NCBI GenBank assembly: GCA_030704615.1
Contig: CM060731.1
Location: forward strand, 19,158,001 to 19,222,000
Source: Takakia lepidozioides
Lineage: Eukaryota; Plantae; Bryophyta
DNA: 64,000 nucleotides
Direction: 5' to 3'
Shown here: one piece after another, positions 15,181 to 49,289 of the stretch
Numbering within the stretch: position 1 is the first letter of the stretch
Layout of the letters: each line of letters begins with the position of its first letter
Position numbers and translations under genes: made by a program
The notes under the pieces: model-generated
What the model saw: only the letters and a program-made list of their open reading frames with translations
What the model was told of the DNA's origin: nothing
Databases searched by the model: none

Positions 15181-15277
15181 TGCCCGGCAAAAATTGGCGG
15201 GCTCCAAGAGGTGTCAATATTTTGAATTCAACCTGGGTTACACGATTCGGTGACATCAAAACCACGTGTAACTCCAC

Positions 15278-18831: not shown

Positions 18832-18939
18832 CCATTGAGTCCATTGGCAATGACACTTATTTTGTGATCACCAAGTTTAATATGAAGTACATGTCTGTTC
18901 ATGGGTTGTTATTCACTTTGTCATTCCATCCACATTCAA

Positions 18940-19975: not shown

Positions 19976-21494
19976 TGCACAACAAACCGCACATTACGAA
20001 CATTACGATGCATCATACAAGAGTTATAATCAATATTCGAAATCAGAGAGGATCAAAGTACAATGAGGTACCTCGAACGCTCCCGCAGAGGGTTACATAG
20101 GGTTACATGGGTTGCAAAGTGTTACAGAGGGTTACATGTAGTGAGGGTTACATAGGGGTGGGGGTGACACTCTGCGGTGTTATAGAGGGTTACATGGGTT
20201 ACATAGGGTTACATGGTGGTGAGGGTTACAGAGGGTCATGGGGTTATATGGGTTACAGAGGGTTACATGGTGGTGTGGGTTACACTCGGCGGAGTTACAG
20301 AGGGTTACATGGGGGTGATGGTTGAACCCGGGGCGGGGGTTACAGGAACTGGCGAACTGCTGGAAGCGGCGGACTGGTGTCGCAGAACGACGACGCAGGG
20401 GGCGACGACGCCGATGGGATGAGGGCGGGGGTGGGGAGGGATTGACCGAGCCCAGCCGGCTGCCTTTCGATGTCTGCCGGAGGCGAAGAACCGGCGGTAC
20501 GGGTGTCAGGGCTGGACCGTCCTGACGCGCTTGCATTAAGTTCTTATATTATTCCTATTATCTTCCGTTCAAATGTCCATCTCAATATTGAAATGGCCAT
20601 ATCAATAGTTCACATGAATTTGAATACTAATATTATTTTTATTTTTATTTTATTATTTTATTGAATGTAACAATTACAGAGGTGTCTTAACAAAGAGGAG
20701 AGTAGGTATTCAATAACAAATAACAAATAACACTCTTTTTGTCATTCTTAGTGTATATTTTTCAGAGTAAGAAAACTATAATATGTAGGATGATATAACA
20801 AAAGAAGAGGTAACATTTATCCAGGTTTGACTGTATGTATATCTTATTCTCGTATGTATAATGCTCATATACATGTACATATGATTCGGTTCGGGTCTCG
20901 TTTGGCACATAGGTCCAAGAGATCGTCTTCTTTGTGGTTGGAGGAGCGGCTTGATTTTCCACAACGTAAGCCACGTCTATAGCACACGGATAAAACTGCT
21001 TGGAAGAAAGAGCGTCGGCTGGGGAGTTGGAGGAGGACAAGGAGCAATGCCACATGCAAATGAAATTTGATGTGATATGGGCACAAGCCTCAATGCACAC
21101 TCTCGGGCCTGTTATGAAGAAAAAACCACGCTTATAGGGTAGCATGTTCATGAGGTATAGGGGCTACTTGTTCTTTATGTGTTAGTTTTGCAAAAAAAAG
21201 TATCACCAATTTCATTTCCCTGTGGAAATTTCACGGAAATTCGGGGAATATGCCCTTGTGCTCACGTGACATGCTCAGGCACTACCCAACCTCAACCACG
21301 GGAGGGTAGCTAACCCACCGCTTTACCCTGCCAACATGATATCTCACATACTTTAGAAATATGCAGAGAATATGTTATGGCAAAGTGAAAATGTGTTGAA
21401 GGCTAGGAAATTGCCAAAGACAAAAAGGCTTCTATTTCTGGTTTTTTCTATTTCAAACTTGTGCTCACGTGAGCACAATAAGGGTCCTCACGTT

Positions 21495-22845
21495 TTTTGA
21501 TAAACAGGGCATCTATCCCATTTTTTTAAATGTCCCAATTTCTGACATAGGCAATTCATGAAGGTCAAAAAAAGGGAGAGGATTGGAACGGCCAATGGGG
21601 AGGAACGGCAGGGGTGTTGGAATGGGTGATATGTAAGGCCATGTCTAGAGAAGTAGGATGAGGCGATGGGGTTGAGGGGGTGGGCCCCATTCTAGAAGAC
21701 TCAACCCCCCTCTTTAGATAGTATATAAAGAGGGGAGGGTTACAATTTAGAGGGTCTTGCCGCCTCCACATTACTTTGGTGGGCTCTAAAAGCAGGCCCC
21801 CCTCAAAAAGTATAAATTTGGAACCCAAACCATCTTCAAATGAATAGAAATGTCAATAACCTGGTCCCAAATCCTGGCAGGGGCTGTTCCTGAAGGTCAG
21901 AAAAAAGAAGAGCATTGGAGCGGCCAATGGGGAGGGAGGGCAGGACGTTGGAATGGGTGAAATGTGTGTCCTCATGTAGAGGCGAGCGTAGAAGCACGAG
22001 GTGGGCCCTCCTTCTACTTCTACAGCTTTCCAGAAGCAGGATGAGGCGGTGGACTCCTCCTAGAAGGCTCCACCACCGTCTTGAGAGAGTATATAATGAG
22101 GGTGGGGGCTACAAGCTACAGGTTTCTTCCGCCTACATCTCACTTTGGTGGGCTTTGCAAGCAGGGCCCCATCAGAATAAGTAAATTTGGAACCTGAACC
22201 ATCTTCTATGAATAGAAATGACAATAATGTCAACAAGCCTCAATCGACGATGGGCTCTCTTGCTTTGGCAAAACATAAGAGGAAGGTAAGACCAAGGGCA
22301 TGACCCAGCACAACACACCAATCGGAGCCTTGATGGGGTGTTTGGTCCTCTGACCACATTTTCTCCATTGACTTGAACATGATGCGTAGTCTTTTTCTAC
22401 AAGAGAGCCAATAAAGGGAACATCAGTTGGGCAAAATTTTAAAGGTAAAAAAAGGAGAGACGATTGGATGCAGGAAAGGTGTAGTAGGCTGGCTAAGCAG
22501 GGGATGATGGGATGAAGACAGGTGTCCAGCCACGTCAAGGTACCAACTGACGACTTTGCACACCTGGCGCAAACCGGCCTTCTAGAAGGTGAGCGCCGCT
22601 TAAAGGCCGGGCCCGCCATAGATTAAAAAAAAGGGAGGTTGTGCTCTAGGTGGCCTCTCTAGCCTCCAACTTACTACCTATTACTAGGGCCTCCATTAAA
22701 AAACAAAAATATTGAACAAATATCATAAGAAATTTATATGCTAGCTCAATAAGGATCATCATTTTTTTTGATAAACAGTGCCTCTGTCCCCTTTGTTTAT
22801 TTTCTTAAAAAAAAGGTCCCAATTTTTGACAGGCGCAATTCACCA
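21495..22845 (+). repeat. Diverged ~330-bp direct repeats (21560-21880, 21890-22230, partial 22440-22720) bracketed by a duplicated TTTTGATAAACAG...GTCCCAATT segment
   Basis: Shared GGA(A/G)CGGCCAATGGGGAGG, TTGGAATGGGTGA, ACTTTGGTGGGCT and ATGAATAGAAATG blocks. Confidence 0.8.
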
Positions 22846-24689: not shown

Positions 24690-27600
24690 AGACTCACTTT
24701 GATCGTTCGCAACATATAGATTTGCTTTCGCTTTAACTGCTTCGGCCTTTCCAATACATCTAGAGCTCTACTTGGAGGTGTTCTTCCGAGGTCGCATTGT
24801 CCACACCACACTGTTTGTATGTATCCACTTTGGTGGATCTTCATTGAACTCCCAAGCTTTGTCCCAGCAATTTCTATACATGTCCACGTCCTCCGTTGCA
24901 GCACCTTTAGGTCTCCACCACTCCAGAAGGACTTGCCGATATTTCTCATTTGAACGGTCACGAACAACATCAGAGATTGCCACACCCATCCAAACTGGAT
25001 ATGTCTCTGTGTCTGGTGGTCGAACAAGTACGAGTTTCCAATTTCAATATCTTTGAATGGGTTCATCTGCTCTTTAGGTCTCTGACTCTTTGGCCCACAA
25101 TAGGGATTCAGCTGGTTGCGATCTTCCTCCTCTGACTCCTCATGACTCTCACGTTTGACCCTAATCCCATCTCTGTCATGGTTATCTTTCTACAAAGTCG
25201 AAGGCCAAAACCCCTCCTCCAGCTTGTCATTTGGCTCAAGCAATGGCTTACCAAGTTCAATAAGAACATCCTTCCAATACTCATCGTAGTTCTTCATGAT
25301 ATTTTCGTAGTTCTTGTCGAGATCCATCCCAAGTCTCCAGAATTCGCGGTACTTCGAAAGGCCATTTACAATACTGGCATTTTTTTTCCCTGACATCTGA
25401 TTTTATTCCCCAAATAGGCTGCAGTGGAACAGGTTCCGGGACCCCTTGGGGTAGCAGGGGAGACCTCCCGTCCTCAGCAACCTTCCACATTTTGACTGCA
25501 CCCTGCTTCGAAAGCCAGTCAGCGTTGGTTGCTGATTTCTTATACTTCATTACATGCCAACCGTCACAATCCACATAGAACTTGAAGATGTGCATTTCAG
25601 ATATGCCGATTAGCGCATCGCTCCCATCAATAATATATCCATCCACAAACTTCTTGAAGTCTGCGACCTCCTGTATCAGTTGAGAGATAAATGACAGGTT
25701 TTGAGACTCCATAAAGATGTGTATGAGATCCGGAAGGATATATGTGCTCTTCTATTTCAACTTCTTTGATAGATACTAAAGTATGCATCAATATCCTCGT
25801 GGGTGTGACCAACCATCAGGAATCCAAGCTGGATCTCTTCAAAAACACCTCTCGCCGTCAAGAGTGATAAAAAAGCAAGCATCCAGCGATTTTTGTTCTC
25901 TCTTGAAGAATTGTCCATTTGCAGGTATAGTCGACAGGGTAATGGCTTGGGATGCCCTAGGCTTCAGTGCTTTCTCACATCGAGACTTTCCCCTCATTAG
26001 AGTTTCGAAAAAGGAGTTCTGCATTGGATGATCGAAAATTTCTCTTGAGTCTCGACACGTCGGCTTCTCAAGAGCGCGAAGACAACGAGCCAAGGAGCTG
26101 ATTGTCAAGTTAGGATCACTTGGCCAGAACTCGTTCGTGAACTGAGCATAAACACCGTCACCATGGCCATGAGTCACCATACCTGTTAGGGATAAGGTAG
26201 TTGACCAAGACCAGATGTCATCTTGTTTGTTACGAGGAGCCGGTCAACGCAGTCTTCGAGTGATCCATCTTATCGTGTATAATACACAAAAATTCCTTAC
26301 CCATCATCGTTGATTCATTTCGCCAACTATGATAAAGCCTGCGACATGACTCATGATGCTTCAAATGTCTCTCAAATTTCCTTTTGTGCTTTCTCTGCTC
26401 CTCAGTTCCGCTGACTGACTTCTGGATAAGATCTTTGAACATCTCACAATCTGTGCATTTCGCGAATTTCCAACCAGGTTTCCGAACCTCAACATTCCCA
26501 AAAAGTTTCGTTCGAATTCGGCTAATTCCAGACTTCGACAATTCCTTCAAGCCCATTCGTTTGTTCGCCTGATCCAATTGTCAACAATATATAGAGTTGG
26601 TATTATATTAGGGACGGGAGACCTCCCGTGGAGATTGAAATTGAGATAGAATATTCCAACATCTACATCCAAGAGATATGAAAATTTGATAGATGGTAAA
26701 AGAACGACAGACACAAAATTTCATTCTTAAATAGATGGACAAAATTGCTCCGAACGATCCATCAATGGACTATCGGTTATTATGCTGACGATTTGATATC
26801 GACTATTAGCACACGTAGCAGAATGGTTACGGGAGGTCTCCCGTGACATATGCTCCTTGAAAGTAGAAAAATATTTATAGAGGCAAAATCGGATTGGGTT
26901 GGAAAGCAGTATCCAACCTCATTGGATAGTTAGTTAAGCTCCTTCCAATTCATCTCCACCGGCAGCAACTTCAGAACATCTTCTCTTCCTTCTCCAATAC
27001 CTCTCATTTTATGAGGCATGAGGTATTGTTTCTGGAAATCACAACCTCAAAACTCCTTCCATTGTAAGGTAGGCATGACGTTTCCACAACCTGGTAGTCG
27101 GTGTTGTAGTCGTCGTGGTATGTCAAACCCTAACTCTCTCTTTGCATCAAAAGAAGATATGCCAAGAAACTTACTCCGGATAGCTTTAGTTTTTTTTCCC
27201 AGCTGAAGTGTTGACAACAGTTTCGAGCACAACAGCTCACAGAGCTTACTACTTGAATTGACTCCGAATTTAAGAGTCAGATCAATTTCTTCCCCCTGGA
27301 GTTCTCATCTCCCTTTCGAACTCGTTTCAAACATTTATACTACGATTTCTTAACTCCTTTGAGGTGGTCATCCTCCGTGTCTGACTCGTGCTCTTCATAA
27401 AAATTTGTGAGCAACTCTGATAGTTTTCGGCCATCTCGAAGTTTTGTATGTGTAAGCCGTCATTTCGTAATGATCATTAGCATATCCTGAGCTGACCCAG
27501 AGACAGCTGTAACAATTACACCGACATGCTCCTCCCAAGGTTTTCACCGAGAATAACTTCGTCAGGTTAGACACGCCACAACCCGTCCTCTCAGCGATGA

Positions 27601-27887
27601 CGTCTCTATCTCGTCATTGAGAAGATTGCACATCTGATTACGCCAAGTATCTCTTCCGAATATATGATGTGCGCCTTTCTGACACTCGGCACTCTTCTTT
27701 TTTGTTGTCTCTTGTGAAACTTTTGTTCCTGTGGCTTCAAAACCATCTGTATTGTCCTTCTGTATTGTATCCTCCAAAATATTTGTGCTCGCTCCAGCAT
27801 CAGACAAGCACACCTCACCCTCCATTCGTACAAGTTTCTCAACTTCACTAACTTTCCAGACAATCGGTTTGTCCAGGGCTTCTCCAA
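24690..27887 (-). pseudogene. Sola-like/DUF7869-type DDD transposase, multi-exon with many frameshifts
   Basis: Manual translation gives FAKCTDC, CIIHDKMDHSKT, MVTHGHGDG...WPSDPNLTI and LQMDNSSRENKNRWMLAFLSLLTARGVFEEIQLGFLMVGHTHEDIDAYFS. The DN..ENKN and GH...D motifs characterise this RNase-H-fold family. Confidence 0.8.
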
Positions 27888-28719
27888 GAGTCTCTCCGGT
27901 CTAGATGTGAATACGGCAAGCTAATTGACTCCATTCCCATGTATCACGGTTTTTCAATATGACGCACTTCTAACTACTAGAGAGACGTCTGCCATGACAA
28001 AAAATCATATTCAGACATGTACCCTCGGGCGACAATTATGGGAAACGGCGAAGAGCCGACAAGTTGGAATGAAATTCACGGCTTCTCCAATAGACAACTG
28101 TCCACAGGGTGGTAAACCATCTTCATCACGGGAGATCTCCCTACTATGCCTTCAAGATAAAAAACGGGGGAAAGCAAAAAAAAAAAAAAAAAAAAAGAGA
28201 AAAGGAAAGTAAAAGATGATATCTCAAATGTGGCACCACTCTGCAGGATGACGAGGGAGATCTCCCTTATAGTCGCATCACCTTAAGTGAGAATCCACAA
28301 AACAATTCTGGATTGTGCAAGATAGAACCTATCACCCACACAGATGTTAATAACACTAGGGCTCACGGGAGGTCTCCCGTTCTGTGATCTCCTATGGCGG
28401 AAAAAGATAAATAGAGAAAAAAAATGTTGAGTTCCAGACAAATTGGAAAGGATCTGCTCAAAGATGACGGGAGATCTTCCATCACATTCAATGGTATATA
28501 ACTGGAGAAGACGAAAGATAGAAAATGAGATTCAGAAAATAGCAACAAAAACAAAGCGAACATATCTAATGGAACAGAACTCTTCTTCGTTGTGCCAGGT
28601 AAAAAAGCAGACTCTCCGTCCTTCCACCACCCTTCCACCACTCTTCAGTCAATCCAGCACATGCGCTCCACAATTCGGCAGGGCTTCGCCGAGACTGAAT
28701 GAAATGAGAGGGAAGATTT

Positions 28720-29700: not shown

Positions 29701-32700
29701 GTTCTTAGGACATGCACCGGGTCATGTCTGCCATCCCCCCGGGTAATAATAAAGTGGAGGCTCCCTGGTTTCTTCTCCCTCTCACACTTTCATGAACCGA
29801 AGCCCTGCTGCAACTTAGAGCCACGAGTTTTGAAGCTTGAGAGGGAGTGAAGGGAGTGAAGGAGGGTCGTGTGTGTGCATCTGACCTGCGTCTGCATCTG
29901 TTGTCTGTTGCGTCTAGCAATGTTTCATGATTTCGTTTGTTAGTTTCAGCTGTGTGGTGCGGTCGTCGTTCAGGAGGGCGATCAGGAGGGCGATCAGGAG
30001 AGCGGTGGCGAGCCCGTGCTGGTGTTTTTGGTGTAATTTGATTAGTGCATTGCTGCTTGCGATTATTCTTCAACCCATGGAAGGATCAAGCTCACGGTAT
30101 GTACTTTTGTATCTTCCCACAACTGATTGATTAGGATTGCATTAGGTGACCCAAGCATTTTCTCATTCCAGGGGAGGTCTCCTTCCCATGCTAGTCATGG
30201 GACCGCTTCATGGATTGGTTTTTCAGGATACAACCAAGTGTTTAATTGATCCAAAAGATGTAATGAAGACACTTTCCACTTCTCCATGGGCACTTTTTGC
30301 TTATCAACTCATGTCCTTCAGTTCTGTCTATGCATGCACCCCTGACCTTTTCAAAGGGTGATGACCTATGCATTTTCCGATATTGTTCGAAGGAAATGGC
30401 TATCTTCTTAGATGATTTTTGTTGCCATGGAGAAATCCACAGTCCACACAAACATCCCGCACTTCGGAAGGCTTTTCTTTCCTCAATGTAGGGAGACTGG
30501 GATTCCTTGAACCCAATGAAATGTGTCTTTGCTATTACCATGGACTCTTGTTAGGCCATAGTGTTCCAAACATGGAATTTCTTCCTAACGACCCATCCAA
30601 GGTCAAGCTCTCCCATTAATTTCTCAGGGGAAGGTCTCTCCCTCTACTCCAGGGGACCTCTCCTGTTTGTTCTCCTCAGGGAGGTCTCCCGTGATAAAAC
30701 CATTGTCGGCGGTAGGGAATGTCACGGGAGACCTCCCGTGATATTTAAGACGTGTATCCAAGAGCGTAATAGAGTGTATAATGTCGACCAGGGAATGAGG
30801 TCATACCGCCAAAGAGTAGTAACTCCCTTTCACTGACCTTTTTTTCAGTTTGAACAGAGTTTGGATCATGCTATCCAGAAATGAGTGGAGGAGGACGGCA
30901 AGGAATCCGAGCTAAGCCATTGCAGTGGAAGCAATGTAATGTTGTCGCCCCAGAGAATATCTAGCACATTCACCAGAATACACCCTGCAGATGACACTAT
31001 TCACCGACAGATTCACCAGTCTACACCCGTGCGAGCACCAGTTTACATACCAGCAGATTCACCAGAATACACCCCCTTTAGAGGATACTTATGTCCCAAG
31101 CAAATTCACGTAGTATACACCCGCTTCAGAGGGACACTTACTTCTTCCACCAGCTGTCACCCCAGTGTAACATACTAGCAGATTCACCATATACAACCCC
31201 CTTTAGAGGACTCGTATGTACCTTCAGATTCATCAGTATACACCCTCCCCTGCAGAGTACACTTACATACCAGCCAGCAGTTGTCTACCCACCCAGTGTA
31301 CATACCAGCGCAGATTCCCAATAATACACTCCAGGACTGTACACTCCACAATAGCACGCCCCTGGATGCACATGTGTATCCTCCCGGAGCAAATTCCCAG
31401 GATGCACAGGCGTCGAACTCAATGGAAACCGACGAAATCTCCAAGATATTCCCTGATTGGGTTTCGGACAACGACTCTTGGAGTCCTGGATACCTCTCCA
31501 GCGACACCTCGAAGGGATCCAAAGCAGGGAAACTAAAGGAGAAGAGTTCTGCACACCAATCGCATAATCAGACTGGCTAGATAGCCCAATGCATTGTGGG
31601 TGACTATAGGGCAATTTCTTGATGTAGATTCTAGCAAACCGTAGATGGTAGGTGGGGTTGCTTCTAGAGGTTTAGGTTTGGAAAGTGTAGGTGGGGTTGC
31701 ATTTTGTGAGTTGATCACGGGAGGTCTCCCGTCACTGTATTGAATTACATCTCTGGTGTACTTGAAGCACCCTGGGTTTTTGATTTACTACTAATTGAAG
31801 TTCTGAAACCTCCATGTTGCTGTTTATATACTGTGTTTATGAGAACTTGAATTATCCTTATTGGTGGTATTGTTCATTGTTGTCACGGGAGATCTCCCGT
31901 GAAATTGAGATATAGCTCCATACGGTTCGGAAAGACCGTTGTGTTGGTTGTATTTGGTGTTTATATTAACGGGTTGTTCTTTTGTTGATTGTGCTGCCAG
32001 AACAAAGATTCCAAAGGAATTAGTCGCAGTTATGAGCGCCGAAATTGCCGGTTCCTTCATATATCCACACATTGAAGAATTCACAATAAAGCATGATGGC
32101 TTTTACGAGCTAAAGAGGAGTATTGACTACTGGGGTATCGACATTGCTGACTCCCCGAACCCAGAGAAAGCCATCTTCCGTTACCAGATTGGTGCAGAAA
32201 AGAAAACACTTTTGTGTTGTGATGTGTTGGGAATTGAAACGGAGGACTCCGAGACGGATAACAGGGTTACCCTTGCTGTGTTCATCCGCGAGAAGCCAGG
32301 AAAGGGAGAAGGTATTGGGTTCTCTGTGGATGCCATGAGTCTGAGTAGTGATCTGATGGATTCACGATTCGGATGGGATTCAGGGTCCCTGTTGTCGAAG
32401 ACAACCTGGAGATGGAAATCCTCAAGAGCTGGAAAATACCTTGACAGAATTCTCTACAATAATGCCAAGGAGAGAAAGCAATTGCAGGTACAACGACTCC
32501 AATCGGAGCAAAAGCAGTTGGAGGACACGAAGAAGAAACCGAAAAAAACAAAAAAGCCAAAAGAAGGAAATGGAGATGATGACGAAGAAGAGGGGGGGGG
32601 AGAAAACGACGAATGGCCATCGATATAGTGAATAGCCAAGAAAAGAGGCACCTGAAGACTGCGAGATTTTTGACCTGGATGAGGCGAAGAAGGTCGAGAC

Positions 32701-34826
32701 GACTCTCATCGAGCAATACCAGGATATATTCCCGTTTGGATTTGAATACGTCCAGGAAGTGGACATCAACCACTATTTTTTGGCCCCACAACATATGGTT
32801 TATCGACCACTCTGTGAGAAACACAAGCTGGAGATTAAATCAAGGCTAGTTGCGTACAACCTAATTGACTCAAAAATGCCTGTTTACTTGATTCCACGAC
32901 ACAAGACCGATCCCACGAAGGTGTGGAGCAGGAAACCCGTCAATGAGCGCGAACTGCAGAAGGCGACATATTTTATTATCGGAGGCCAACATACATTGAT
33001 GGCAACCCAGGTCAGGGGAGGTCTCCCGTGCTAACTCACCTTCAAGAAATTCTACTTACTATTTGACCATGTATTTGTCCACTGTCCATTTTCGATTGTC
33101 TCTCTTATAATGCTAATCAACTGAACTGTGATGATTGTAGGAGCTCTTGGAGGCCGGCACTGAGTAATGATGTCCTGATAAAATCGCTACGTACATGGCC
33201 TGCTAAGATAGTGTACTCGATGGATGAGCTTCGACTGGTGACTATCTCCAAGGTTCTGAATAAGCCCAACAAGGAGAATCTTTACGAACCGTCTTTCTAT
33301 GAAAAGGTCCGTCACTGCAGAAATATTACAATTACAAGGAGCGGCCCCAGAAGTATGATGAGCATCATCGAGTCGAGACTCAGCAGTGGAAGGTGAGGGT
33401 GACCACCAGAGGTCTCCCGTCCTCTCTTTCCATTCATCTATCACTGCAGCGATGCAATGGATATCTACATTATAGTCGATCGAAATCCAATGTCATCACC
33501 CACACCAGCAACCACATTCGTTGTCCCAGCAACTTCTCTTCCGTTCAGGTCATTTGGGATGTGTTCTGCTTTGTTTTGCGGTGCTTCTCTCTTTCTCCAA
33601 TCTGGTGACATTCTCGATCTGGAAGAGATCCACGCACCATCCAGATTTGAAGTTGGGGATGATGCTTCATGATGTGATTGTCTCTTGGTTACTTAAGGGT
33701 TTCTGTACCACAGGTTTGACTCTGTTCTAGGTCAAGAATGTCTCCAGAAAAAGAAAGGGGAAAATGGAGAAGCAAGCACGCAATACAAAGTAGGAGACAC
33801 TCCAGAAAGAGTGACCAATTGTCAACATCCTCTTGGTTGTTTTAAATCATCAATTGAAGGTGTTGGTAGGAAGTTAGCTGGACGTGTTTGAAGTGCTGGA
33901 GTTAGCTGGAAGTCCGTAAGTGTTGGCTGAATGTGAAAGTTAGGAAGGGAGACCTCCCATGGTAGTTAACTACACTTGTTGGTATGTGCAGGATTTCATG
34001 GTCGGACCTCAAAACCATTCTGGATGTGAAAAACGACAAAGAGGCAATGCCACTTGTGTTCACCTCCGATCGGACCTGGAATTACTGGACAAGAGTGTTC
34101 ATGAAATGGAGAAGGCGAGCTCATTGACCCCAAAGGGAATATCCCCATGAAAAGCAGCCAGCACTCAAAAAATCTAGCGTTGCTCGACTGCAGGGTTTGG
34201 ACGACAGCCAGATTTGGAAGGTTGCCCACATGTTACTCAAAAACAAAGTGTCGATGCGTCATCCATACACAGGGCCTGACCCCGATGTTCTGAGTCTAGA
34301 GGATTATTGCAAGTACAAGAAGTTGAGGAGGCACAATATTGATGATATCATGGTCGGTTTTGGATTTAAGGAGCCGACGAAGGACAACCGACATCCATAC
34401 ACAAAGTTGGAGTGGACCGCCATCAAACATAAGTACGAAATCAACAAGCACAGTTTTTGTGCACTTAAGAATGCTCTCGGAACCCCTACCTTGACGCAAA
34501 AATGAAGCCAACGACTGGAAAGCAGAAGCAACCACTTCAATTTCTGAATTAATTCAAGCCATGAAATCGCTTGCAGAGACCCACGAGGTTCGCTTGATAG
34601 AGTTTGCAGTGTGTGCGAGATTGGAACAGGGCTCGAGAGATTGAGACGGTGGCAATGTTCGCCACAAAAGCATTTGAAGTTGTTTCGCTCATCATGATCA
34701 GCACATTGAATGAGCGTCCAGACAAGATCGAGCCTTGGATGGAGAATGAGTTCGCCGACCTCTTCAATGGCATGAGGGTCAAGAAAAATCAGGACCAACG
34801 TATTTTGTGTCATCACACGATACTGA

Positions 34827-35078
34827 TAGCTCTCATGAGCTGCTAGCGTACATTCAATCCACAAAGGGGAAATTCCTTATAGAGACAAGCTTCTACATTC
34901 CATTGAGAGGGAGATTTTTTTTCAAGACAAAGAATTTTGAGACTCCAATAAATAGCTCTCATGAGCTGCTAGCGTACATTCAATCCACAAAGGGGAAATT
35001 CCTTATAGAGACAAGCTTCTACATTCCATTGAAGAGGGAGATTTTTTTCAAGACAAAGAATTTTGAGACTCCAATAAA
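34827..35078 (+). repeat. Near-perfect ~125-bp tandem duplication spanning an exon end and intron start
   Basis: ATAGCTCTCATGAGCTGCTAGCGTACATTC...GAGACTCCAATAA occurs twice. Confidence 0.9.
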
Positions 35079-35490
35079 TATTCATTTCCATTTCATTTTT
35101 CCGATGGCAGACGCGGAGTGGGACACCGTGGACGAGGTCGTGCGGAGGAGCATCACAGCCGACCATCGATACATCCCAAGAGTGCTACATACAAAGGCGG
35201 AAGAATCTGAAAATCCTCTGCAAAGTCGCTACTACAACAATGAGATCCGATCATCGGCCATCGACCAGGTCGTTGAGACCTTCTGTCCGGAGGGCTCTTC
35301 CGTTGTCAATGTGTATTGTTGTGGGATTGTCACATACTCGCTTCTGGTAAGAACCTACAAACTCAAATGTTAATTTGCTTCGTGAAATTTTCGTCCAGTG
35401 ACGGGAGATCTCCCGTCAATCCTTTTGTCGGGAGATCTTCCGTCGTTCGTTTAGTGGGATACATCCGGCGGTAAATTAAGTTCAATCAGG

Positions 35491-37020
35491 ACACTAGTGA
35501 TACCCAGGTGATTAACCACACATTCATTACGGGGATTTCAAGAGTGCCTGAACAGACTTACCTTGTAAACCACAAGACTTTATGCAACACTGGCAATGTT
35601 GGATAAGATCTTGTAGTTAACTTGGTAGGTATGGCCAGACATAAAACTTGAAGTATTTCCCAGATTGTGAGAGCTCTCATATTGCTTCACATGATGGGTT
35701 GAAAGTGTGCGTAGGAAGTCACCATATTTTCCAAGCGATTTTTTGACCTCCTTCTACGGGTGACCTCCCTTCTTTCTTTGTCTAGGTTCATCTGTGTCTT
35801 TCACTGTATCCAGTTCGTAGAATTTGGATCATTGAAACCTTCTCCCTTCCGGTCCATTGACCATTCAAGTATTTCAAGATGAACCTCGAGTAGGACTTGG
35901 CTGGCACGACACGCTACTGATACCCAAGTGATCCATAACATTCATGACGGGACATTTGGAGTGCAGCCAAATACTTTCAGAGGGCGACACAAGTCTTTAT
36001 ATTACAGACTGGCGATGTAATCTAAAATCTTGCGTGGCTTTAATGTAAGTATGGCCATGCACAAGCCTGAATTGTCACTGCTAAGAATGATGATGTGTTG
36101 AAAGTGTTTTTGGCAGAAGTCCAGTGAACGACCTTTTGACCATTCATTTGAACAATCATTTGAGATGAACCTCGCGCTAGATTACTGTTTCAAAAACACT
36201 ACTGATACCCACGTGATTAGCTACATTCATTGCAGGACTTCTCTAGTTGCCTCCGTATTCTTACAAAGTGATACACAAGACTTTAGTTAACACACTTGCG
36301 ATGTTATCTAACATCTTGGGTATCACTTTGTAACTATGGCCATGCACATGCAGGAATGTCTCTGCTTTGAATGCTATATCCTTGCTTCAAATGATGATGG
36401 GTTGAAAGTGTTTGCTGGCAGACGTGGATTGACAGGAGATCTCCCAGCTTTACTATGTCGGGAGACCTCCCGTTGTTGCTTCTCGGAAGATAATGACCAT
36501 TAATGACCATTCTTTTCGGCCTGTTTAAGATGACCAGTCTGACACAAAACACTATTAATAACCTAGGTGATTAACCACAATGATTAAGGGGATTTCAAGA
36601 GTGCATGATCAAACTTACCATGTAAACCACAAGACTTTGTGTATCATTAGCAATGTTATATAAGATCTTGTGGTTTACTCGATAAGTATGGCAAGCCAGA
36701 AACATGGAGTAATTCCCAGATTGATTTATTGATGATGTGTCAAATGTGAGTGCTGGTAGAATTTCATTGATGGGAGATATTCTGTTCTTCCATTGACGGG
36801 AGACCTCCCGTCCTCCCTTTCACTATACTTATTTGAGTCTTGTCCGGCGAGGAACTACCCGGATGATTAGCCAGATTCATTCTGAGTGCATGCGCATTCC
36901 TACAATGTGATACACAAGATTTTATTTAACACAATGGCGATGTTATCTAAGATCTTGTGGATCAATTTGTGGGCATGGACATTCTAAGTCTCTGAAAATG
37001 AGTCCTCTGTTATTGCTTAA
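35491..37020 (+). ncRNA. Intronic array of structured-RNA units 1-5 (pre-miRNA-like hairpins with conserved flanks)
   Basis: Units start at ~35491, 35911, 36196, 36548 and 36853. Each has GTGATTA..CATTCAT, then a hairpin (CACAAG...loop...ATCTTG), then ATGATG(G/T)GTTGAAAGTG. The arms covary. Strand is assumed from the host gene. Confidence 0.55.
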
Positions 37021-37669
37021 CCCCTAAGCGTCAAAACGACCCAACTTGGGTCGGTTGGGTTTAGAAAACAGGCTGGTTATCCCTGAGGTTAAGCCTGATG
37101 TGGGCCCACATAGGCTCATTCGATTGGAAATCAAGTCAGGTATGATGTGGCATTGCCCAATTGGTCATATGTCTTGGCAATTGCCACGTGGAGAGCGTAG
37201 AGTCCGCCACACTCGTGATTTTGAGGCCACTTTCCACCATCTAACCTGCCTTGAGGATGACGTGACAACTAGGGTCAGGTTAGGGTGAAATTCCATGCAC
37301 CCCCCCATGGCAGGGTGGCGCGTCTCCCAACACCCTTTATTGCGCCACTTACCCCCCTAAATGGCACCCGCAGCCGACCTGCCTCGGAGATCTCCATGCC
37401 TAATCCCCAAGCTGGAATCAATGGCGATGGTAGCTCCGGGCGTGGTTTGGTGTCAAACCTGTTGTTGTGGTGGGGGGGGGGGGGCGGGAGGAGACTCAAT
37501 TGATGCGCAGCGGTGCGCAGCTCGAGAGCTGCCTCGAGATGCTTCTTCGACATTTTTTATTATCGCATTGATGCGATGTTGTGTGCGAGGGAGGCAGCGC
37601 AAGTGGACAGGCATAGAGCCGCGTTGCGTACCTCCAGCCATGCCCGTGAGATTTACTTCAATGTTTTTT

Positions 37670-38135
37670 TTTGGTGATTTCTCACTCCATGCTTGTGCGA
37701 TGGCTGCGCAGGCAAGGAGCGAGCGGTGGTGGCAGGGAGCGAGCGAGCAGGTGAGTGACCACTTGCAATGGTTTTTTTTTTTTGTTTTTTTTTGTTTTGT
37801 TTTGTTTTTTCGGTGATTGGCTCACTCCATCTTGTGCGATGGCTGCGTAGGGAACGAGCGGTGGTGGCAGGCAGGGAGGAAGCGGGTAGCTGCGCAGGGA
37901 GGGAGCGAGCAGGTGAGTGACCACCTTCAATGCTTTTATTATTATTATTATATTTTTGGGCGATTGGCTCACTCCATGCTTCTGCGATGGCTGCGCAGGG
38001 AACGAGCGGGTGGTTGCGCAGGGAGGAGGAGTTATTTTTTTATTTTTTTATTTTTTATTTTTTATTTTCCGACTTTGTGTGATTTCTCACTCACTCCATG
38101 CGTGTGCAAGGGCTGCGCAGGCAGGGAGCAAGCGA
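37670..38135 (+). repeat. ~140-bp direct repeats in the piggyBac left internal region
   Basis: CTCACTCCATGC..TGCGATGGCTGCGCAGG..GAGCG units separated by T-rich runs. Confidence 0.8.
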
Positions 38136-38474
38136 GAGGGGAGGCAGGCTGCCGTCCTCACCTCCAGCAAAGCCCTACTGGGCGCTAGCGATGGTGGCCT
38201 TCAATTCCAACGGCGATGGAGGCAGCGTGGGGCCTGAGCGCATCTTGTGGGTACACTTCGAGCCTCCCTGACTTCATTTCCTGCTTTTCACGTACATTCA
38301 CCTTGAGTTGCCTTGAAGTTTTTGGATAGTTTTGAATGCAGTAAGTCTAATGGTTGCCTTGCTGTTATGGCTGCATATGATTACTGCTTGCCTGCCATGG
38401 GAGGCGATTCTTCATGGGTGTGCCCTGTGTGGGGGAGGTAGCCAGCCTCCATGCAGGTAATCAGCCTGTCCCTT

Positions 38475-38506
<32 letters not shown>

Positions 38507-39678
38507 CCTTCATTTTTGGGTTTGTTTATGCAAATGGTGGATTTCGCTATGGGTTTATCAAATCCAACCCATAATGCCAGCCTACTTGTGTCTTCTCCCT
38601 TCCCCTCTTGAAGTTCCAGCCTATTTTTGTCTTCTCCCTTCACTCTCTTTTCCCATTACTGAAGGTGTTTTCCATTTTGTTTGTGTTTTCTTTTTTGTGT
38701 GTGGGAGGGCTGCCAGGCAGACCAGCCACTCCAAGCCATCATTGTGTCTCCTCCTTTGCGCCATGCTTGTTTATGGCTATCCAAGTTGCCCTACATGGCC
38801 TACTATGGCATCAACCCTCAAGGAGTCTGAACAAAAGCTAAGTATATGACTCCTAACTGGCCTTGGGGTTCTTGTCTTCTTACTTGTCATCGCAACCATT
38901 GTGTGTTGGTGTTTGCCTAAGGTACTGTGCTTCATCTTTGCATATATCACAGTGATTGCAAACTAACCAACACTATGCTTCTCTTGTCATGGCAAGATCT
39001 AATGGCTTTGATGGCAAGTACTAATGTCTACCTCTTTTTTTGTTGTATATATGGCAAGTTGTGGAGGGTGGTCAATGAAGGCTGCCCGCCTACAGCCCCC
39101 AACCCACCTTCCATTGCGGCAAGTGTCAATAGGGTTGAATCAGGCCCTGATGCATCCTCCACAAGTGTTGCAGCCCCAAGGAGGTCCCCTTCCTTCGACC
39201 TCAACTTGCCACCCCTCCCCACAGTGGATGGCATCTCAAATGAGCCTTGGCCCGAGCTTCAGGTTGAATCACGGCCAAACTAGGATGCCACATTTCTGAG
39301 CCTACCCCTTTGCCACTTGAAGGACCTCTTACAATTGAAGGTAGAGTTTGTTCCACCTCCCCTCATGCAAGTAGTTTGATGGCCTCACAAGAGACTTTTG
39401 TTTGCTGTCCCAACCTTGAAAATGGTCATGAGATGCTTGTGGATGAGTGGCAACCTCCCAACCAACCTTCCTTGAGTTTCCAGCCACTTGGTGTGGGTTG
39501 TCCCAGCCCTGAAAATGGTCATTTCATGCTTTTGGATGAGTCCCAACCTCCTACCCAACCTTCATTGAGTTTTCAGCCACTTAGTGTAGGTTGTCCCAGC
39601 CCTGAAAAGGGTAAAGGGGTCCTTGTGGAAAAGTCCTAGCCTACCTCTCGATCTTCAAGGAATTTCCAGCCACATGGA

Positions 39679-41782
39679 GTGGCTCATGGGCCTTCAAATG
39701 TGGCCAGTACTTCTAGTGGGAGGTCTAATTCATATATGGTCCGCCCTTGTGTACCAATTAGAGTGAAACAGGGGCTGCTATTTGGTGAGAGTGACAAATA
39801 TGTGGATCCAGAAGCTTATTGGTGTTATGGGGAGATTATTGAGTCTTGGGTGCATGTGCCATCGCAAGAGAAACGAGTTGAGGCAGACTTTGGCCCTTTG
39901 ATTGATTTGAGGACCCTTGCCATTGGGCAATGTGAGTTGCTAGGGCTGCCTAGTTCTAGTTTGTTTGGGGATGGCCTTGATGGTGGGGTTGAAGTACCTT
40001 TGGGGCTGAATTCCATGGGGGATTTGTGCTCACAACACTTGTTGGATAGTGTTGATATTCCTGAGCATTATGATGATGAGGACTTCATTGGGGATGATCC
40101 CCTACCCCATGAGGTTGACACGGACGATGAGGACTTATGGAATGTGCCCGGGCAAGATCAAGACTGTCTCCTTGGTGAATTGGGCGCATATTATGATTCG
40201 GTTGACTTGGATACTATGCACCTCAAAGATCTCTTCAAGGACAGCAATTGGAAGTCCCGACAACCACTTTGGACCCAAGCCCGGCTGAATTCAGTGGACC
40301 AGCCCCTGGGGCAACCTTGCCAGCCATATTTAGGCATTGTGGGATGTCTTGGTTTGATCTATTCTTCCCTCGCAAGAACCTACTTCGTATATGTGAGGAA
40401 ACCAATAGGTATACAAGGTCTTTCATTGATCCAAGTAGTGGTAGAACACATGGTGGGTCAGATTGGAGTCCTTTGGGTGTTGTGGAATTGAGGGCATTTA
40501 TGGGCATATGTGTGTACATGGGTCTTAGAAAACAGCTTGTAGGAGGTCCTATTGGGAGCCCGAGGGTGCTTTGTATGCTTCAGCCACTATCAAGAAAGTA
40601 ATGACGAAGGCTAGGTTTGAGTCAATCCTTAGATGTCTTCACTTGGTAGACAATGCAAGTCTATGTCCTGAAAAATCCAGCCCTGATTATGATAAGTTGG
40701 GGAAGTGCCGGTGGTTGGTAGAGGAGTTGGTGAGAATTAGTGGATCTTTGTACAAGGCTGGAAAAAAATTGACCATCGATGAGATGATGATTGGGTACAA
40801 AGGATAGTACTGCGCTTTCAGGCAGTACATGAAAGCCAAGCCCACTAAGTGGGGCATAAAAGTATGGTGTGTTGCGGATGCCCAAACTAAGTATGTCTTG
40901 AATTTGAGAGTTTACTTGGGGGCTGAAGTGAGCAATGAGAGGCAACATGGCAACAAGAAAGAGGCAGGAGGGCAAGGTTATCATGTGGTCTTAAACTTAC
41001 TTGAAGGGCACCTCCATGTGGGACATACGGTGGTAATGGATAACTTCTTCACTTTTCCAAGGCTTTATTGGGAGTTGTTGAAGGTTGGGACCTATGCCAC
41101 GGGAACCTTGAGGGCTGATCGCATTGGAGTACCTTTATCCTTGTTGGGACATGTGCGAGGGAAACGTGGAGATCTACGGTACAAAATGCACCGCTCTAGG
41201 AAGATGTGTTGTTTGTTGTGGTGGGACAACAAAGGAATCCTACTCCTCTCTACTAGTGCCAACCCCCTTCGTAGTGGTTCTGTTCCAGCCACAGTCTTGC
41301 GATGGGATGGGGTGGTTGGGGCACGGGTTGAGGTGCAATCCTCACCCATACACTTGGAATATCAATCATTCATGCGAGGGGTGGACGTGCATGATCAATT
41401 GCGAGGCTCATATTCATGTCAAACTCGTAGCCACAAGTGGTGGCACCACATCTTTTTCTTTGTCCTTGATACCTCCTTAGTCAACATGTACATTCTTTAT
41501 AGAAGTCATATGACTTCTTTGGGGCAAGAAGTCATGACTCATGCTGCGTTTCAATTGTTTGTTGCAGAGGCACTTACAAGGGGATGGGAGAGTGGGGGCC
41601 GCATTTGCACATCCTTGCTTGTGCCGGCTGGAATGGCTGCAATTCACTATTTGGCGCGGTCTAACTTGAGGCGCAGGTGCTATGTATATAGCACGAGGTG
41701 CCGGTGGTTTTGTAGGTGTTGCGGTGGGCGTTTTTTGTGCCATGACACATGTTTTGCACGTGTTCATCGTCGACGCCGCTAG
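39679..41782 (+). pseudogene. piggyBac (DDE_Tnp_1_7/PGBD4-like) transposase with frameshifts and one in-frame stop at ~40805
   Basis: ICEETNRY, ELRAFMGI, MTKARFESILRCLHL, TIDEMMI (D1), YMKAKPTKWGIK, VMDNFFT (D2), GVDVHDQ (D3), KWWH.IFF, and a C-terminal Cys-rich RRRC...C..C...LC...CF..H. Confidence 0.92.
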
Positions 41783-41904
41783 GAATGGGTGTGGAGGAGT
41801 GTGTGTGGAGATATGGAGGGTGTAAACTAACTTTAGGGGCCATTCATGTTGGCTGGAAAGTTTTTGGGGGCTGGAATTGTCATGGGGCTGACATGCAATA
41901 GTAT

Positions 41905-42200
41905 AGATTGCACTAATATTGACATAGAGGGGCTGGAATTTTGATGGGGCTGCCACACTAATGAGTATAAGGCATAGTTGGGAGATGTAGGGGGTGTAAT
42001 TTGCACTAATATTGACTTAGAGGGGTTGGAATTTTGATGGGGCTGCAACACTTGTGAGTATAAGGCATAGTTGGGAGATGTAGGGGGGCTAATTTGCACT
42101 AATACTTGACTTAGAGGGGCTGGAATTTTGATGGGGCTGCCACACTAATGAGTATAAGGCATAATTGGGAGATGTAGGGGATCTAATTTGCTACAATACT
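41905..42200 (+). repeat. Three ~88-bp tandem repeats downstream of the piggyBac transposase
   Basis: GAGTATAAGGCATA(G/A)TTGGGAGATGTAGGGG occurs three times. Confidence 0.9.
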
Positions 42201-43839
42201 AATATTAGAGGGCTTTTTGGTTGTCTGGAATTTCCATGTGCCATAAGAAATAGCATATGTCATGGCTGGAATTTTTTTAGTATTGAAATTTGCCTATGTT
42301 TGTGCAAATATTTCCATTTTGATAGGCCTTGAGGCTTTTTTGATGAGTAGGAGGCTCTCTGACACTTTGTTTAGGGATGGTAATGCATAGTAGGGGCTGA
42401 TAGGGTGGTGGGGTGGCAGGAAGATATGTAGGGTTAACATCTTCACAAGGAGCGGCGACATTCATTTTGCCAAGTCTAACACCTCTACACCAACATTAGT
42501 TGGGGGCCGGGGGGGGGGGGGGGGGGTTGTCGGCTGCGATGGGCAGTTCAAGTGGGTTCAATCCCCACCCGAGTCGTGGGTGTGGTAGATTAGTTGGGGC
42601 TGATTGGATGCCTAAGGAGGTAGTTTAGTTTCATCTTTGATGTGGGTGTGGTAGAGGAGTTGGGGCTGATTGGGGTTGGGGGAGGAGAAGTGATGTTTTT
42701 GTGATGGAGGGTATGGTAGAGTAGATGGGGCTGATTTGGTGAGGGTGGAAGAGTATGAGGGGCTGATTGGTTCCTTGCATTATTGTAGACACTAAGTTCA
42801 ACACTATGCTGAACTAGTGGTCATGTTTTGATCATGGTGGAATATATGGTTCAATGGCCGATTGAACCAAGTGATGATAGCATGCAACACTAGAACATAT
42901 GAGGACTTGTGCAAAATGATGTGTGACAAATGAATACACTACAGGTTCAAGAACTTATAAACACTTAGGCAAAATTGGTGTGTGATAGATCAATACACAA
43001 AAAAGTAAAGGACTTAGATAAATTGAGTGGATGCACATAGTGCAACAAAGGGAGGGCTTAGGGCCAAAATGGACAAGTTGGTGGGGTGGGTGACCCCAAA
43101 ACCCAATAAACATAGGGGTGGCCCGAACCTGGGTGGGGGGGTGGACATGCCTTGGGAGGGGTGGAGGCATAATCAATTTAGGGACGGGTAGAATGAGGCA
43201 CCCCCTAAAACCCTCCACAAGAGAGGGCTACTGGCCAAAAATTATAGGCCCACATAGGTGCAATTGCAAGTCTCATGGGTAGGGGGGTAAAAAGACCTAG
43301 TAGTAGACTCAGATTGGCCCGAAATGTTTTTGGGGAAAAGCCATACCCACCCACAACATTCCCACCGGAGTGATTTCAAACGTTTTCCTCAATTTTCTGA
43401 ACAAACCTTTTTGCCTGCCCGAAGGAAAATCCCAAATTTGACCCCCCATTTTTAGCATACAAAGCAGCCCACCTGAGATTATGTCAGAAAAAAGATGAAA
43501 TTTGCAGGGAAGGTGTCTTATATGACAGGGCACCAGATTCTGGAGAGTGTCATGTCAGACCAGTTCGCACATGGGAAATTCGATAGAAAAAACATTTTTT
43601 TTCCCTATTTATTTCATGTTTTTTTTTTTTTTTTTGCACCACTTTAGACATTATATTCTTTGGATCTGCTGGTTGGATTTAGACAGGGATTTTTGTGGTC
43701 GTAGGTGGGGTAGTTGAGAGTATATTCCAACGGTTAGTTTTACAGGGCCTTAGTAAATCTCAAGATATAATGTTTTAGAGGGCCAGGGTCCAGTTTTTGA
43801 GGTCTTGGCAAAAATTGGCCCTTGTCCTTTAGGGGTTAA

Positions 43840-44431
43840 AATGATGGGTTTAATGTGTGAGATGGAAGTATGTATGTACGTACATACGTGAGATGGATTA
43901 GTTTATAAGGATGTTGTTCTAAATTATATTGATTTTTTGGTTACGTCCTATGACGGGACACCTCCCTTCATACATTGCCAATTCCTACTGATACCCATTT
44001 GATTAGTAACATTCATCATGGGACATTTTGGGGTGCAGCCAAATAGTTACAGAGGGTCACACAAGTCTTTATGTTACACTCTGGCAATGTAATCTAAATC
44101 TTATGTGGCCTTCATGTAATTCTTGGCATGCACAAGCCTGAATAGTTCTTGCTTACGATGATGGGCGGAAAGTGTGAGTAGGCAGAGGTCCATTGAATAT
44201 CCTATTTGATTAGTAACAACCCAAGTGATTAGTAACATTCATTACAAGACATTTCTAGGTGCAACCAAATAGTTGCAGAGGGTCACACAAGTCTTTATAT
44301 TACACACTGGCGATGTAATCTAAAATCTTGTGTGGCCTTCATGTAATTATGGCCATGCACAAGCCTGAAATGTGTTTGCTCGGTTAATGCATGAAATTAT
44401 GATGGGTTGAGAGTGTGAGATGGCGGAAGTT
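43840..44431 (+). ncRNA. Continuation of the hairpin array (tail of unit 5, units 6 and 7) after the piggyBac
   Basis: Units at ~43984 and ~44218, with hairpins at 44033-44133 and 44259-44360. Confidence 0.55.
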
Positions 44432-46382
44432 CCGGTTTATTCTAATTAAATTACATCGTTCGATGGGCGATCTCCCGTCGTCCTGCAACGGGAGGCCTCC
44501 CGTCCTCCTTTGAGCATTAACATCTTTCTGTTGGGACTGCCCAGTTACTGAAAATTACTAACCGGTTAATTTTTGATACATCAGGAATCGAACTGTAGGG
44601 TGTTGGAAGTAACGCACCCTGGTCGTATGGTCTCAGCAAGAGCCTCTGCTGAGAATCCTTTAACCTTATCAAACTGTTGCGTTCAAAGGTTTCTGCCGAA
44701 AAAGCGCAATCCTCCTCGGAGTCTGAGGGCAGGGGCAAGGGATCTACTGGGGGTGAAGGTATTGTGGAGTCTTCACCAGTTACACACGCTCGTTCTGAAA
44801 GAAGTCAAGGTCACCAGGAGAGGTCACAAATGTCCCGCGACACCAACTCTCGAAAGGATTTACTAACGCAACCAGATACAGCCGGAAATAGACCTGTGCA
44901 CTTGGAGGAAGATGAAGATGACAGTAAGACTGAATCCAACGGCGTGCAACAGAGCCCAATTTTTCAAAACCCATTTATCCAGCATTCGACTGGAGTGCAT
45001 GTACGCGACGTGGAGTCAGAAAATATTTCGCCAAACGGGCAAGCTAGAGGCCGGCGAACGACGGGCGGTACGCTTCAGTTCTCCCCAGAACCAATATCCT
45101 CTAGGCCCCCGAATATCTCAACTCGCCAGCTGTATAATCCTCAGATCGATGCAAGAGTGCGAGTCAACGCGGGCATGCACAGGGAGATTATCAATATTGA
45201 TGATGACGAAGTGGTCAACAGGGTTGAGTCAGCATTTCATTATGGAGGGCCAACGAATGCCTCCATTGACTTTACTTCCCAAATCCAATATACAGGTGGG
45301 GATAGTCTTGTCGCGATGTTGGACTTTTCTGAGATGACACCCAGTCAAGTCGATTACTTTCTTTCCGCAGACCTTATCACGGGAGGTCTCCCGTTCTCCA
45401 AGGCTCGGCGGCTGGCACTGCAACCATGCTTGTCGTCCTCTCCTGGTGGAACACCGGTCCCCACATTCACTCAAACTTTTTTACGTCCACAAGACCTCCC
45501 AGGAACCGAGTACATCGCATCTGCAGGAACCACACCAGTCCTCGAACAAGACGATGCAAATCTGAGTCAATCACAGCTGTCTACAGTGGAGAACCTCACC
45601 CAGTCCCAGACCCAGACAAGGACAATGAAAATAGAGCTTCCCACTCCACAGCTCCTTCATGGTGTTAGCAATACAGAGCTCATTGACACTCTTGCCAATC
45701 CGTTGCCGACACAATTCCCCATAACCGAGGACATCACATCTGCTAGAAACACACAAGATCTCATTCAAAACCCTGACACTTTAAGGCAGTCATAGCTGTC
45801 CTCCATCGACCACATCCCACAGACGCAGACATTGGAAACGGAGCTCCCTACTGGTGTTAGCATTCCCGTCCTGGATGGTGTCGTTGATGGGTTGAGGGCA
45901 ATTGTTGACGGCTATTGTACCCCTTCGACCGTTGGTCTCCGGAGGATGTTGCAACAGATGTTGTGGAGGTTTCTATTGTTAATTCCTCTCCATCAAGGGT
46001 GGGCACGGGAGGTCTCCCGTCCTCTTCTTTTGGGAATACCTCAGCATTAGTGCAGTTGAACGTTAATGAGGGTCGGGTTGAAGACTCTGGAGAGAATGAT
46101 ATCACCGCTGCTACAGAGGCACTAGCAAGGGGGGTTGTTATTCCATGAGCTCATGAGCGGGCACGGCTCACCCATGAGCCGCCAAGTAACACACTATGAT
46201 TTTCGGCAGGTTTTTTCCGGGTCCAAAACGATAAAATAATCGAAAGTAGTATAAGAAGAGAAGGTTTTCGAAGATTTCCGTGCTCATGCTGGAAGCACTC
46301 TGCTCATAAGTACCAGTATCCGCTCATGACTTGGAGCCCAGCTCATGGACCGCCAGGCCAGGTCATAGAAAAATAGAATTCT

Positions 46383-46860: not shown

Positions 46861-47081
46861 TAGGGCCGACAAGTGCTAGATGCAAACTGTCCTGAAACTA
46901 GTGCGGATTTGTCTAATAAAAGCACACATGTCGGAGGAAATTCAAGTTCTGCCGTATACGACATTGGCAGTGCAGCAATGATATATCCCTCTTCCGCCGG
47001 CCTCGCTCTCATTTTGCTCTTCACTCTTCTCTTCTATGCCCATCTCCTCCGTGCTCTGTGTTCTTGCTGTGTCGTGAGGCC

Positions 47082-49288: not shown

Positions 49289-49289
49289 G

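Follow-up and report, generated by a model that had tools for sequence, protein, structure and literature searches.

The 64-kb stretch of DNA analysed here (the window) on balance appears to contain, in damaged form, one copy of a giant multi-copy Sola1 DNA transposon of a plant, probably a non-seed plant, with a self-marking accessory protein and a hairpin array acquired later. The core of this design, a ParB-type gene with its own palindromes inside a large transposon, is already reported from algae. The original prediction described a new system; this is unsupported, because both the combination of Sola1 with a ParB-methyltransferase (MTase) layout and the idea of self-binding have been published. 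What is new is that two metagenomic relatives retain the transposase, the ParB gene and palindromes, with a distinct palindrome in each of three ParB clades. The hairpins occur family-wide in the host species and are missing from the two metagenomic relatives. In addition, three hairpins have variable stems that match the GGGTTACA repeats of a neighbouring, unrelated MULE at miRNA grade.

The transposase (24690..27900, minus strand; spliced and frameshifted) is of the Sola1 type. The predicted DDD transposase on this strand was recovered with a DUF7869 match (E=3.5e-28) and the motifs IIHDKMD, QMDNS and HTHEDID; homology to Sola1 and these three Asp motifs place the element in that group. The protein is collinear with the transposase of the metagenomic relative L129 (~27-63% identity), and in a by-eye alignment 22/50 positions are identical to the core of Sola1-1_Ec32. 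Sola1 transposons duplicate 4 bp of target, preferably AWWT (PMC3845634). Repeated end searches of the element and its flanks found no TIR/TSD pair: matching 4-mers were present at no candidate end pair, and the sole TIR-type match was a 10-bp self-palindromic pair at 23072/46159. The borders of the element are therefore unproven. Those proposed originally, 21137 and 46128, are not supported: they have no TIR/TSD pair, the left one stands 2 kb outside the first palindrome, and on the right the sequence continues into repeats and ORFs that are unrelated. The copy looks truncated on its right side.

A piggyBac transposon (37021..43835, plus strand; DDE_Tnp_1_7 E=1.9e-38) is nested in the element. 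It has the TTAA duplication on both sides, contains no palindromes and is missing from other copies of the family. The frameshifts noted originally are present in the window copy, and neither they nor the piggyBac are common to the main family contigs. Contigs of the family in the host species span exons and hairpins alike without the indels of the window copy. Near-identical family copies with open frames exist in the host species.

The 16-bp palindrome ACGGGAGNNCTCCCGT, which has no strand, is dispersed from 23093 to 46020. It has 39 sites at no more than 3 mismatches, 32 at no more than 2 and 13 exact ones, while Markov controls gave a mean of 0.6 sites and a maximum of 3. Although about half of the element is coding, 36/39 sites are non-coding. 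They are found in the introns of both genes without clustering at the ends, and many lie between the two genes (28128-29640) or downstream of the transposase (23093-24664). Two exact sites are within an exon; several others are 12-130 nt from exon edges, and one begins at a donor site. No sites (≤3 mismatches) were found in 1-21136 or 46129-64000, and none from 36812 to 43952, the piggyBac region. The palindrome had been said to cover the element and to stop at its borders and inside the piggyBac; its absence from the flanks and the piggyBac was confirmed, the borders themselves were not. Its description as parS-like is apt for length and dyad symmetry only; the sequence differs from the bacterial parS consensus. 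A metagenome scan for the palindrome returned single-site matches only, which were taken as chance.

The divergent multi-exon gene on the plus strand exists as predicted, with the YFIIGGQHTLMA exon at 32636-33010. Its spliced model was searched exon by exon. The 5' exons (~30076-30095, 30853-31596 and 31990-32661, plus strand; edges approximate) have no Pfam match and encode, over 30076..32661, a Tyr/Pro-rich low-complexity part and then a domain of unknown function, to which the N-terminal domain of the L132 clade has no match. They are followed on the same strand by a ParB/Srx-like domain on two exons (32662-33010 and 33142-33392; motif IIGGQHT) and by a helical linker with a degenerate N4C/N6A-methyltransferase-like region (33732..35346), which contains a copy-specific 126-bp duplication (34826-35077). 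The last recognisable exon (44585..46145, plus strand) is low-complexity. The accessory gene of relatives includes FCP1-like domains; no remnant of the NIF/FCP1-like domain that lies downstream in relatives was found within the 64-kb window.

The ParB fold proposed for the protein family is supported by an AlphaFold model of the homolog P0038 (pLDDT 75), whose top structural matches are all ParB, KorB, PadC, Noc or Srx. The match scores are modest (best Z 8.1, Foldseek E 0.02) and P0038 is a ~30% identical homolog, linked to the ParB exon of the window via P0007 (E=5.7e-7). Helices follow the ParB domain in this model, and the structural matches stop near residue 160. The Atlas neighbours of the window's own ParB exon are DUF6551, ParB_N and DUF3723; an AlphaFold model of this exon, a half-domain, reached pLDDT 56 and gave no meaningful match, and searches of PDB, Pfam and phage sequences with ParB or MTase-like pieces found nothing. 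The arginine-rich CTP-binding motif GxxRxxA was not found in the family, which has GQH(T/S/M/I) without arginine. ParB-like spreading, part of the original prediction, is not supported, as the missing arginine motif is required for CTP-clamp sliding. GQH(T/S) in place of the arginine patch is closer to DGQHR/Srx-type members. The element showed no ParA-like ORF.

The degenerate methyltransferase-like domain had been overlooked in the original prediction. A motif-I-like stretch at ~35230-35346, continuing at 44585, is equally placed in the window and in L129, L127, L004, L130 and L132. A profile of the MTase-like region of relatives ranked the window exon first, yet only with E=0.06, and the exon has no Pfam, PDB or Atlas match. 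The catalytic motif IV, (D/S/N)PP(Y/F), was not seen in the window frames, nor in the L132 ORF, which is intact and carries IIDSTEG where the motif would be expected. Motif resemblance alone suggests that the accessory gene carries a degenerate amino-methyltransferase-like domain.

Both metagenomic relatives, L129 and L133, have the divergent transposase + ParB layout of the window with a different 16-bp palindrome (18 sites vs 0.2 expected in L129, 20 sites in L133). In the third ParB clade (L132, L135) the palindromic repeats are different again; no Sola transposase was seen in these two loci, though palindromes adjoin their ParB genes. L134 has the ParB exon and no palindrome array. Palindrome variants therefore track protein variants, as anticipated, with distinct palindromic repeats in each of the three ParB clades. 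The anticipated co-occurrence across species was found for transposase, ParB gene and palindrome (L129, L133) and failed for the hairpin array.

In the preferred reading, a dimer of the accessory protein would bind the palindrome of its own family, spread through all non-coding parts of the element, and would so mark its own copies, keeping them expressed or competent to transpose. The protein would work like VANC on VANDAL and neither slide as a CTP clamp nor methylate actively. The family-specific motif does run through the non-coding regions and differs between related elements, as in VANC systems, and marking of its own copies is also what has been proposed for the published algal parallels. 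It is improbable that the palindromes are instead bound by the transposase or a host factor, as internal enhancers or subterminal-type sites, with another job for the ParB gene. DNA transposons commonly carry dispersed repeats that bind proteins, and the transposase, too, differs between clades and so could track the palindrome equally well; however, the sites are present throughout the introns of both genes rather than gathered at the ends, and palindromes are found beside ParB genes in Plavaka elements and in L132/L135. It is very improbable that the palindrome works in RNA, as a short stem-loop governing how transcripts of the element are spliced. The sites close to exon edges and at the donor would fit such a role, and the palindrome could form a 6-bp stem with a 4-nt loop, but many sites are intergenic or downstream of the transposase and the two exact exonic sites also speak against it.

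The predicted seven covarying hairpins were confirmed in their folds, double changes and common intron. Units u1-u5 (35489..37020, plus strand) have cores near 35540, 35957, 36243, 36597 and 36882, spaced 285-417 bp apart, and u6 and u7 lie at 43980..44440 on the same strand; after removal of the piggyBac all seven are in a single intron (35347-44584). Fold z-scores range from -4.2 to -6.9. Double changes were found in 8/26 pairs and 92% of cells pair, a level reached by 0/500 shuffles, with the units representing only about three lineages. An MFE index of 0.85 is passed by 6/7 hairpins and only two other places in the window. The units are stable, long and imperfect hairpins, as plant MIRNA precursors are, and each consists of a conserved scaffold and a variable stem of ~20 nt. 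Divergence is greatest in the lower stems (53-56% vs 71-82%), whose pairing is nevertheless kept. RNA model R1 found no eighth full unit in the window and no array unit in eleven related loci, and the array does not belong to the module shared across species. Rfam had no match for the hairpins. A C/D box snoRNA cluster was considered and rejected: the units have a TGATGA-like motif, but not all of them keep CTGA.

A SWIM-type MULE (12700..20600; no strand) with long TIRs and GGGTTACA/TGTAACCC arrays lies nearby, separate from the Sola element. Targets of the hairpins were searched for across the 64-kb window. Their best candidate target is another transposon rather than a host methylase; the variable stem at 44046-44061 matches the MULE repeat at 13350-13365 (16/16). 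The hairpins may be remnants of a piece of MULE repeat that was captured, inverted and duplicated in tandem, with a DNA-level or neutral role and arms matched by gene conversion, a possible explanation held with low confidence. In u6 the entire 5' arm, with its conserved upper stem and loop, aligns ungapped to the MULE repeat (29/38, by hand), the ratio of G-U to A-C shows no significant bias (19:14, p=0.49), joints in family contigs skip or repeat units, and relatives have no such array. Such an origin is harder to reconcile with the unit-specific compensatory changes (arm pairing energy -33 kcal/mol for own vs -21 for swapped arms), with lower stems diverging faster than unpaired flanks, and with better folding of the plus strand in 5/7 units; capture is also compatible with a guide function.

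More doubtful is the reading of the hairpins as small-RNA guides against the GGGTTACA arrays of the competing MULE, that is, transposon-against-transposon silencing. In one fixed register, the scores of the seven variable stems against the MULE repeats are 12, 13, 13, 13, 12, 16 and 15 of 16, where the background reaches at least 13 in 1.2% and at least 15 in 0 of 3000. The alignment score of the u6 arm is 41 vs a shuffle maximum of 35, and plant-miRNA-style scores are 3.0 (u6), 4.0 (u7) and 3.5 (u4) vs 5-6 in 37 kb of control DNA. However, the match was found post hoc, the units are related by common ancestry, and u2, u3 and u5 do no better than controls in local alignment or target score. 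In the preferred reading the array would be a later, lineage-specific addition, the accessory-gene transcript would probably be cut there into small RNAs, and at least some of these would be complementary to the motif arrays of the unrelated MULE family. The joint proposal of two programmable parts, a ParB-type protein protecting its own copies via the palindrome and intronic small-RNA precursors silencing the self-recognition repeats of a rival, is considered unlikely; the array would then be a fixed scaffold with an exchangeable guide, steering host silencing onto the competing transposon.

For the ParB-methylase accessory genes of giant transposons in algae, binding and marking of the gene's own element has been proposed, and the window family offers a sharp test of self-marking: its site is short and exact, its proteins fall into three clades that differ in their sites, and near-identical open-frame copies exist. 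A sequence-specific self-protection protein, if true, would solve the VANC problem in a second, unrelated way and might serve as an epigenome-targeting tool. Hairpins that silence another transposon family, if true, would mean competition between transposons through small RNA, a direct warfare. In the literature searched (most subscription papers lay outside it) no case of transposon-against-transposon silencing by small RNA was found.

The closest known element is Sola1-1_Ec32 of Ectocarpus, a Sola1 of 21.5 kb that encodes, on the opposite strand, a protein with ParB-like and N4C/N6A methyltransferase parts, for which binding and modification of its own element have been proposed (PMC12477816). 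It shares the opposite-strand ParB-MTase layout and a related transposase core. It differs in its host, a brown alga, and in its resolved 282-bp TIR and 4-bp TSD (PMC12477816); palindromes and hairpins, present in the window element, are not mentioned in the accessible part of that publication, and the plant copies lack a visible MTase catalytic motif. The Bostrychia Plavaka elements with PAG2/PAG3 are giant DNA transposons with a ParB-like gene beside inverted-repeat arrays and proposed self-binding (bioRxiv 10.1101/2025.02.11.637652). They resemble the window element in being giant DNA transposons that combine a ParB-like accessory gene with inverted repeats, but the transposase is EnSpm-type, ParB forms a fusion with a 2OG oxygenase, the methylase has a gene of its own, and the repeats are in tandem beside the gene rather than dispersed. 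Arabidopsis VANDAL elements encode the anti-silencing protein VANC and have family-specific non-coding motifs that diverge between families, in regions that are also RdDM targets (accessible parts of PMC5735166, PMC10398659). An element-encoded protein and family-specific, diverging non-coding motifs are common to both; VANDAL elements, however, are of the Mutator superfamily, no ParB-type protein is described in those accessible parts, and the function is proven there and predicted in the window element. With bacterial ParB-parS, KorB and Noc the element shares the N-terminal fold (homolog model) and a 16-bp dyad site, but it has no ParA, its site is unlike parS, and GQH(T/S) replaces GxxRxxA. 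Transposon-borne miRNAs are known, for example rice miR820, and miRNA genes are also born by inverted duplication of their target. Hairpin precursors inside a DNA transposon are the shared trait with the miR820 type, whereas the window array has seven hairpins that combine a conserved scaffold with stems that vary, and its candidate target is the repeats of another transposon instead of a host silencing gene.

The window is eukaryotic in character, rich in repeats, contains spliced genes and presumably belongs to a non-seed plant. Three Asp motifs are found in its minus-strand transposase pieces, which hit DUF7869 at E=3.5e-28, and their core, aligned by eye, is identical to the published Sola1-1_Ec32 transposase at 22/50 positions. 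The Sola-like DDD transposase of the original prediction is thereby upheld, and the enzyme is classified as Sola1-type on its protein; the element ends gave no confirming features. The proposed borders, 21137 and 46128, did not hold up. No TIR or TSD for the Sola element was found within the window, 21137-23070 is free of the element's palindrome and has its own direct repeats, and on the right the sequence gives way to unrelated repeats and ORFs. The left 2-kb segment is low in CpG; its direct repeats, two to three in number and 330-370 bp long, are degenerate. On the right, 46375-49288 contains a 64-bp tandem array holding a 22-bp near-palindrome, an orphan ORF of 191 aa (+) and, tail to tail with it, an ORF of 322 aa (-) that has a SWIM-like Cys/His motif; this is probably another mobile element. 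The nested piggyBac (37021-43835), 6.8 kb long and lying in a plant genome, is strongly CpG-depleted (o/e 0.38) and has several internal repeat sets, with an acidic ORF preceding its transposase. The two far flanks (4900-5804 and 57103-57774) have repeats of ~75% identity in common, in both orientations. A RAD51-family host gene, a single 515-aa ORF with a long insert (58395-59942, -), is presumably XRCC3-like.

The palindrome ACGGGAGNNCTCCCGT occurs at 39 sites between 23093 and 46020 (at most three mismatches; 13 exact; 0.6 expected). At this threshold there are none in the window flanks or in piggyBac, as predicted, but the sites do not extend to the proposed left border. Although about half of the element is coding, 36/39 sites are non-coding; two of the three exonic sites are exact. 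Between the transposase and the accessory gene, three 108-bp repeats (29292-29640), each with a variant palindrome centred on CC, make up a candidate promoter region.

The accessory gene was searched exon by exon. The YFIIGGQHT exon matches only distant fragments (28-41% identity), and in the Atlas it lies next to DUF6551, ParB_N, and DUF3723. The following exon is the window's best match, a weak one, to the second half of the ParB domain. For a longer homologue a fold was predicted (pLDDT 75). Its best matches were without exception ParB, KorB, PadC, Noc, and sulfiredoxin, but they scored modestly, with Z reaching 8.1. The ParB-like protein is retained. Clamp-like sliding is doubtful, because this family has no counterpart to the arginines found in ParB's CTP motif. 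Downstream lies a beta-class amino-methyltransferase-like layout with a motif-I-like stretch that the window shares with five relatives; catalytic motif IV was not seen there, and database searches of the region gave no support. The relatives' genes run on into NIF/FCP1-like domains, which were not found in the window. Tyr-x-Pro-rich repeats at 30853-31420 loosely resemble the RNA polymerase II CTD heptad, and the domains downstream in the relatives are FCP1-like phosphatases.

These homologues come from metagenome contigs, whose layout suggests moss-like hosts. In contig L129 a collinear transposase lies ~8 kb upstream of the ParB exon, divergent from it, and a different palindrome, CCTAGTGGCCACTAGG, is present in 18 copies (0.2 expected). 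L133 is arranged likewise and has 20 sites. In L001, L004, and L127 there are 8-15 sites each and L130 has 3, while those in L134 are not above chance. L132 and L135 form a well-supported third ParB clade with other palindromic repeats. The site therefore varies with the clade of the protein; with three clades this describes a pattern and does not test co-evolution. L132 (1000-13260) has open ORFs for ParB (401 aa), an MTase-like protein (444 aa), and two NIF proteins, with >40 phased repeats, and is a good template for structural work.

The seven covarying intronic hairpins were confirmed. The units (230-400 bp) each have a stem of ~45 bp (z -4.2 to -6.9), show double changes at eight pairs, and pair better with their own arms than with swapped ones (-33 vs -21 kcal/mol). 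Variation is greatest in the lower stem, at 53-56% identity vs 71% in the upstream flank and 80-82% in the upper stem. The hairpins had no Rfam match and no significant G-U bias. The expected co-occurrence holds for transposase, ParB, and palindrome (L129, L133) but not for the array, which was not found in the relatives. Their intron at this position is apparently only ~60 nt. On both counts the array is an addition of this lineage. In three units within 35540-36700 (u1, u2, and u4), donor-like GTAAGT/GTAGGT in the 3' arm is paired with U1-like ACTTAC in the 5' arm; this is not seen in all units and is probably chance.

The part most worth following is a match between the hairpins and the neighbouring SWIM-MULE transposon. 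The variable stem of u6 is an exact 16-nt match to its GGGTTACA/TGTAACCC repeats (12.7-20.6 kb), and that of u7 matches at 15/16. In one fixed register all seven stems match at 12-16 of 16, where background attains 13 in 1.2%. In a shuffle test u6 scored above 200/200 and u7 above 197/200, the other units being marginal. Plant target scores were 3.0 (u6), 4.0 (u7), and 3.5 (u4) vs 5-6 for control DNA. The match, a post hoc discovery, is firm in one lineage and suggestive in a second. It fits hairpins acting as guides against a rival element; capture of SWIM-MULE repeats as their origin fits as well, since the entire u6 arm resembles these repeats. The SWIM-type MULE itself (12052-20845) has ~480-bp TIRs (12721-13194 / 20092-20566, 93%) and 141 GTTACA/TGTAAC cores across its non-coding parts, and may be a VANC-like motif system in its own right.

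Same-species DNA contigs cover the ParB exons and u1-u5 continuously at similar depth. Were the lower mode of depth to stand for a single copy, there would be ~6-9 close copies, depth being no copy number. The main family contigs lack the window copy's single-base indels, 126-bp duplication, and piggyBac, so there are probably copies whose frames are open. Assembly errors may account for some of the indels. One RNA run yielded no contigs, which is no proof of silence.

Beyond the anatomy and conservation observed here, the most likely reading, held with moderate confidence, is that a dimer of the accessory protein would bind the palindrome of its own family and maintain the activity of its own copies, as VANC does for VANDAL elements, and probably without methylase activity. 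The hairpins would probably be cut from the intron into small RNAs. A literature search found no description of such a module from land plants. The design as such is of a known kind, and the claim of a new system was not sustained. Ectocarpus Sola1-1 (21.5 kb) has an opposite-strand gene combining ParB with an N4C/N6A methyltransferase; modification of the element itself has been proposed as its role (PMC12477816). In Bostrychia Plavaka elements, ParB genes adjoin inverted-repeat arrays (10.1101/2025.02.11.637652).
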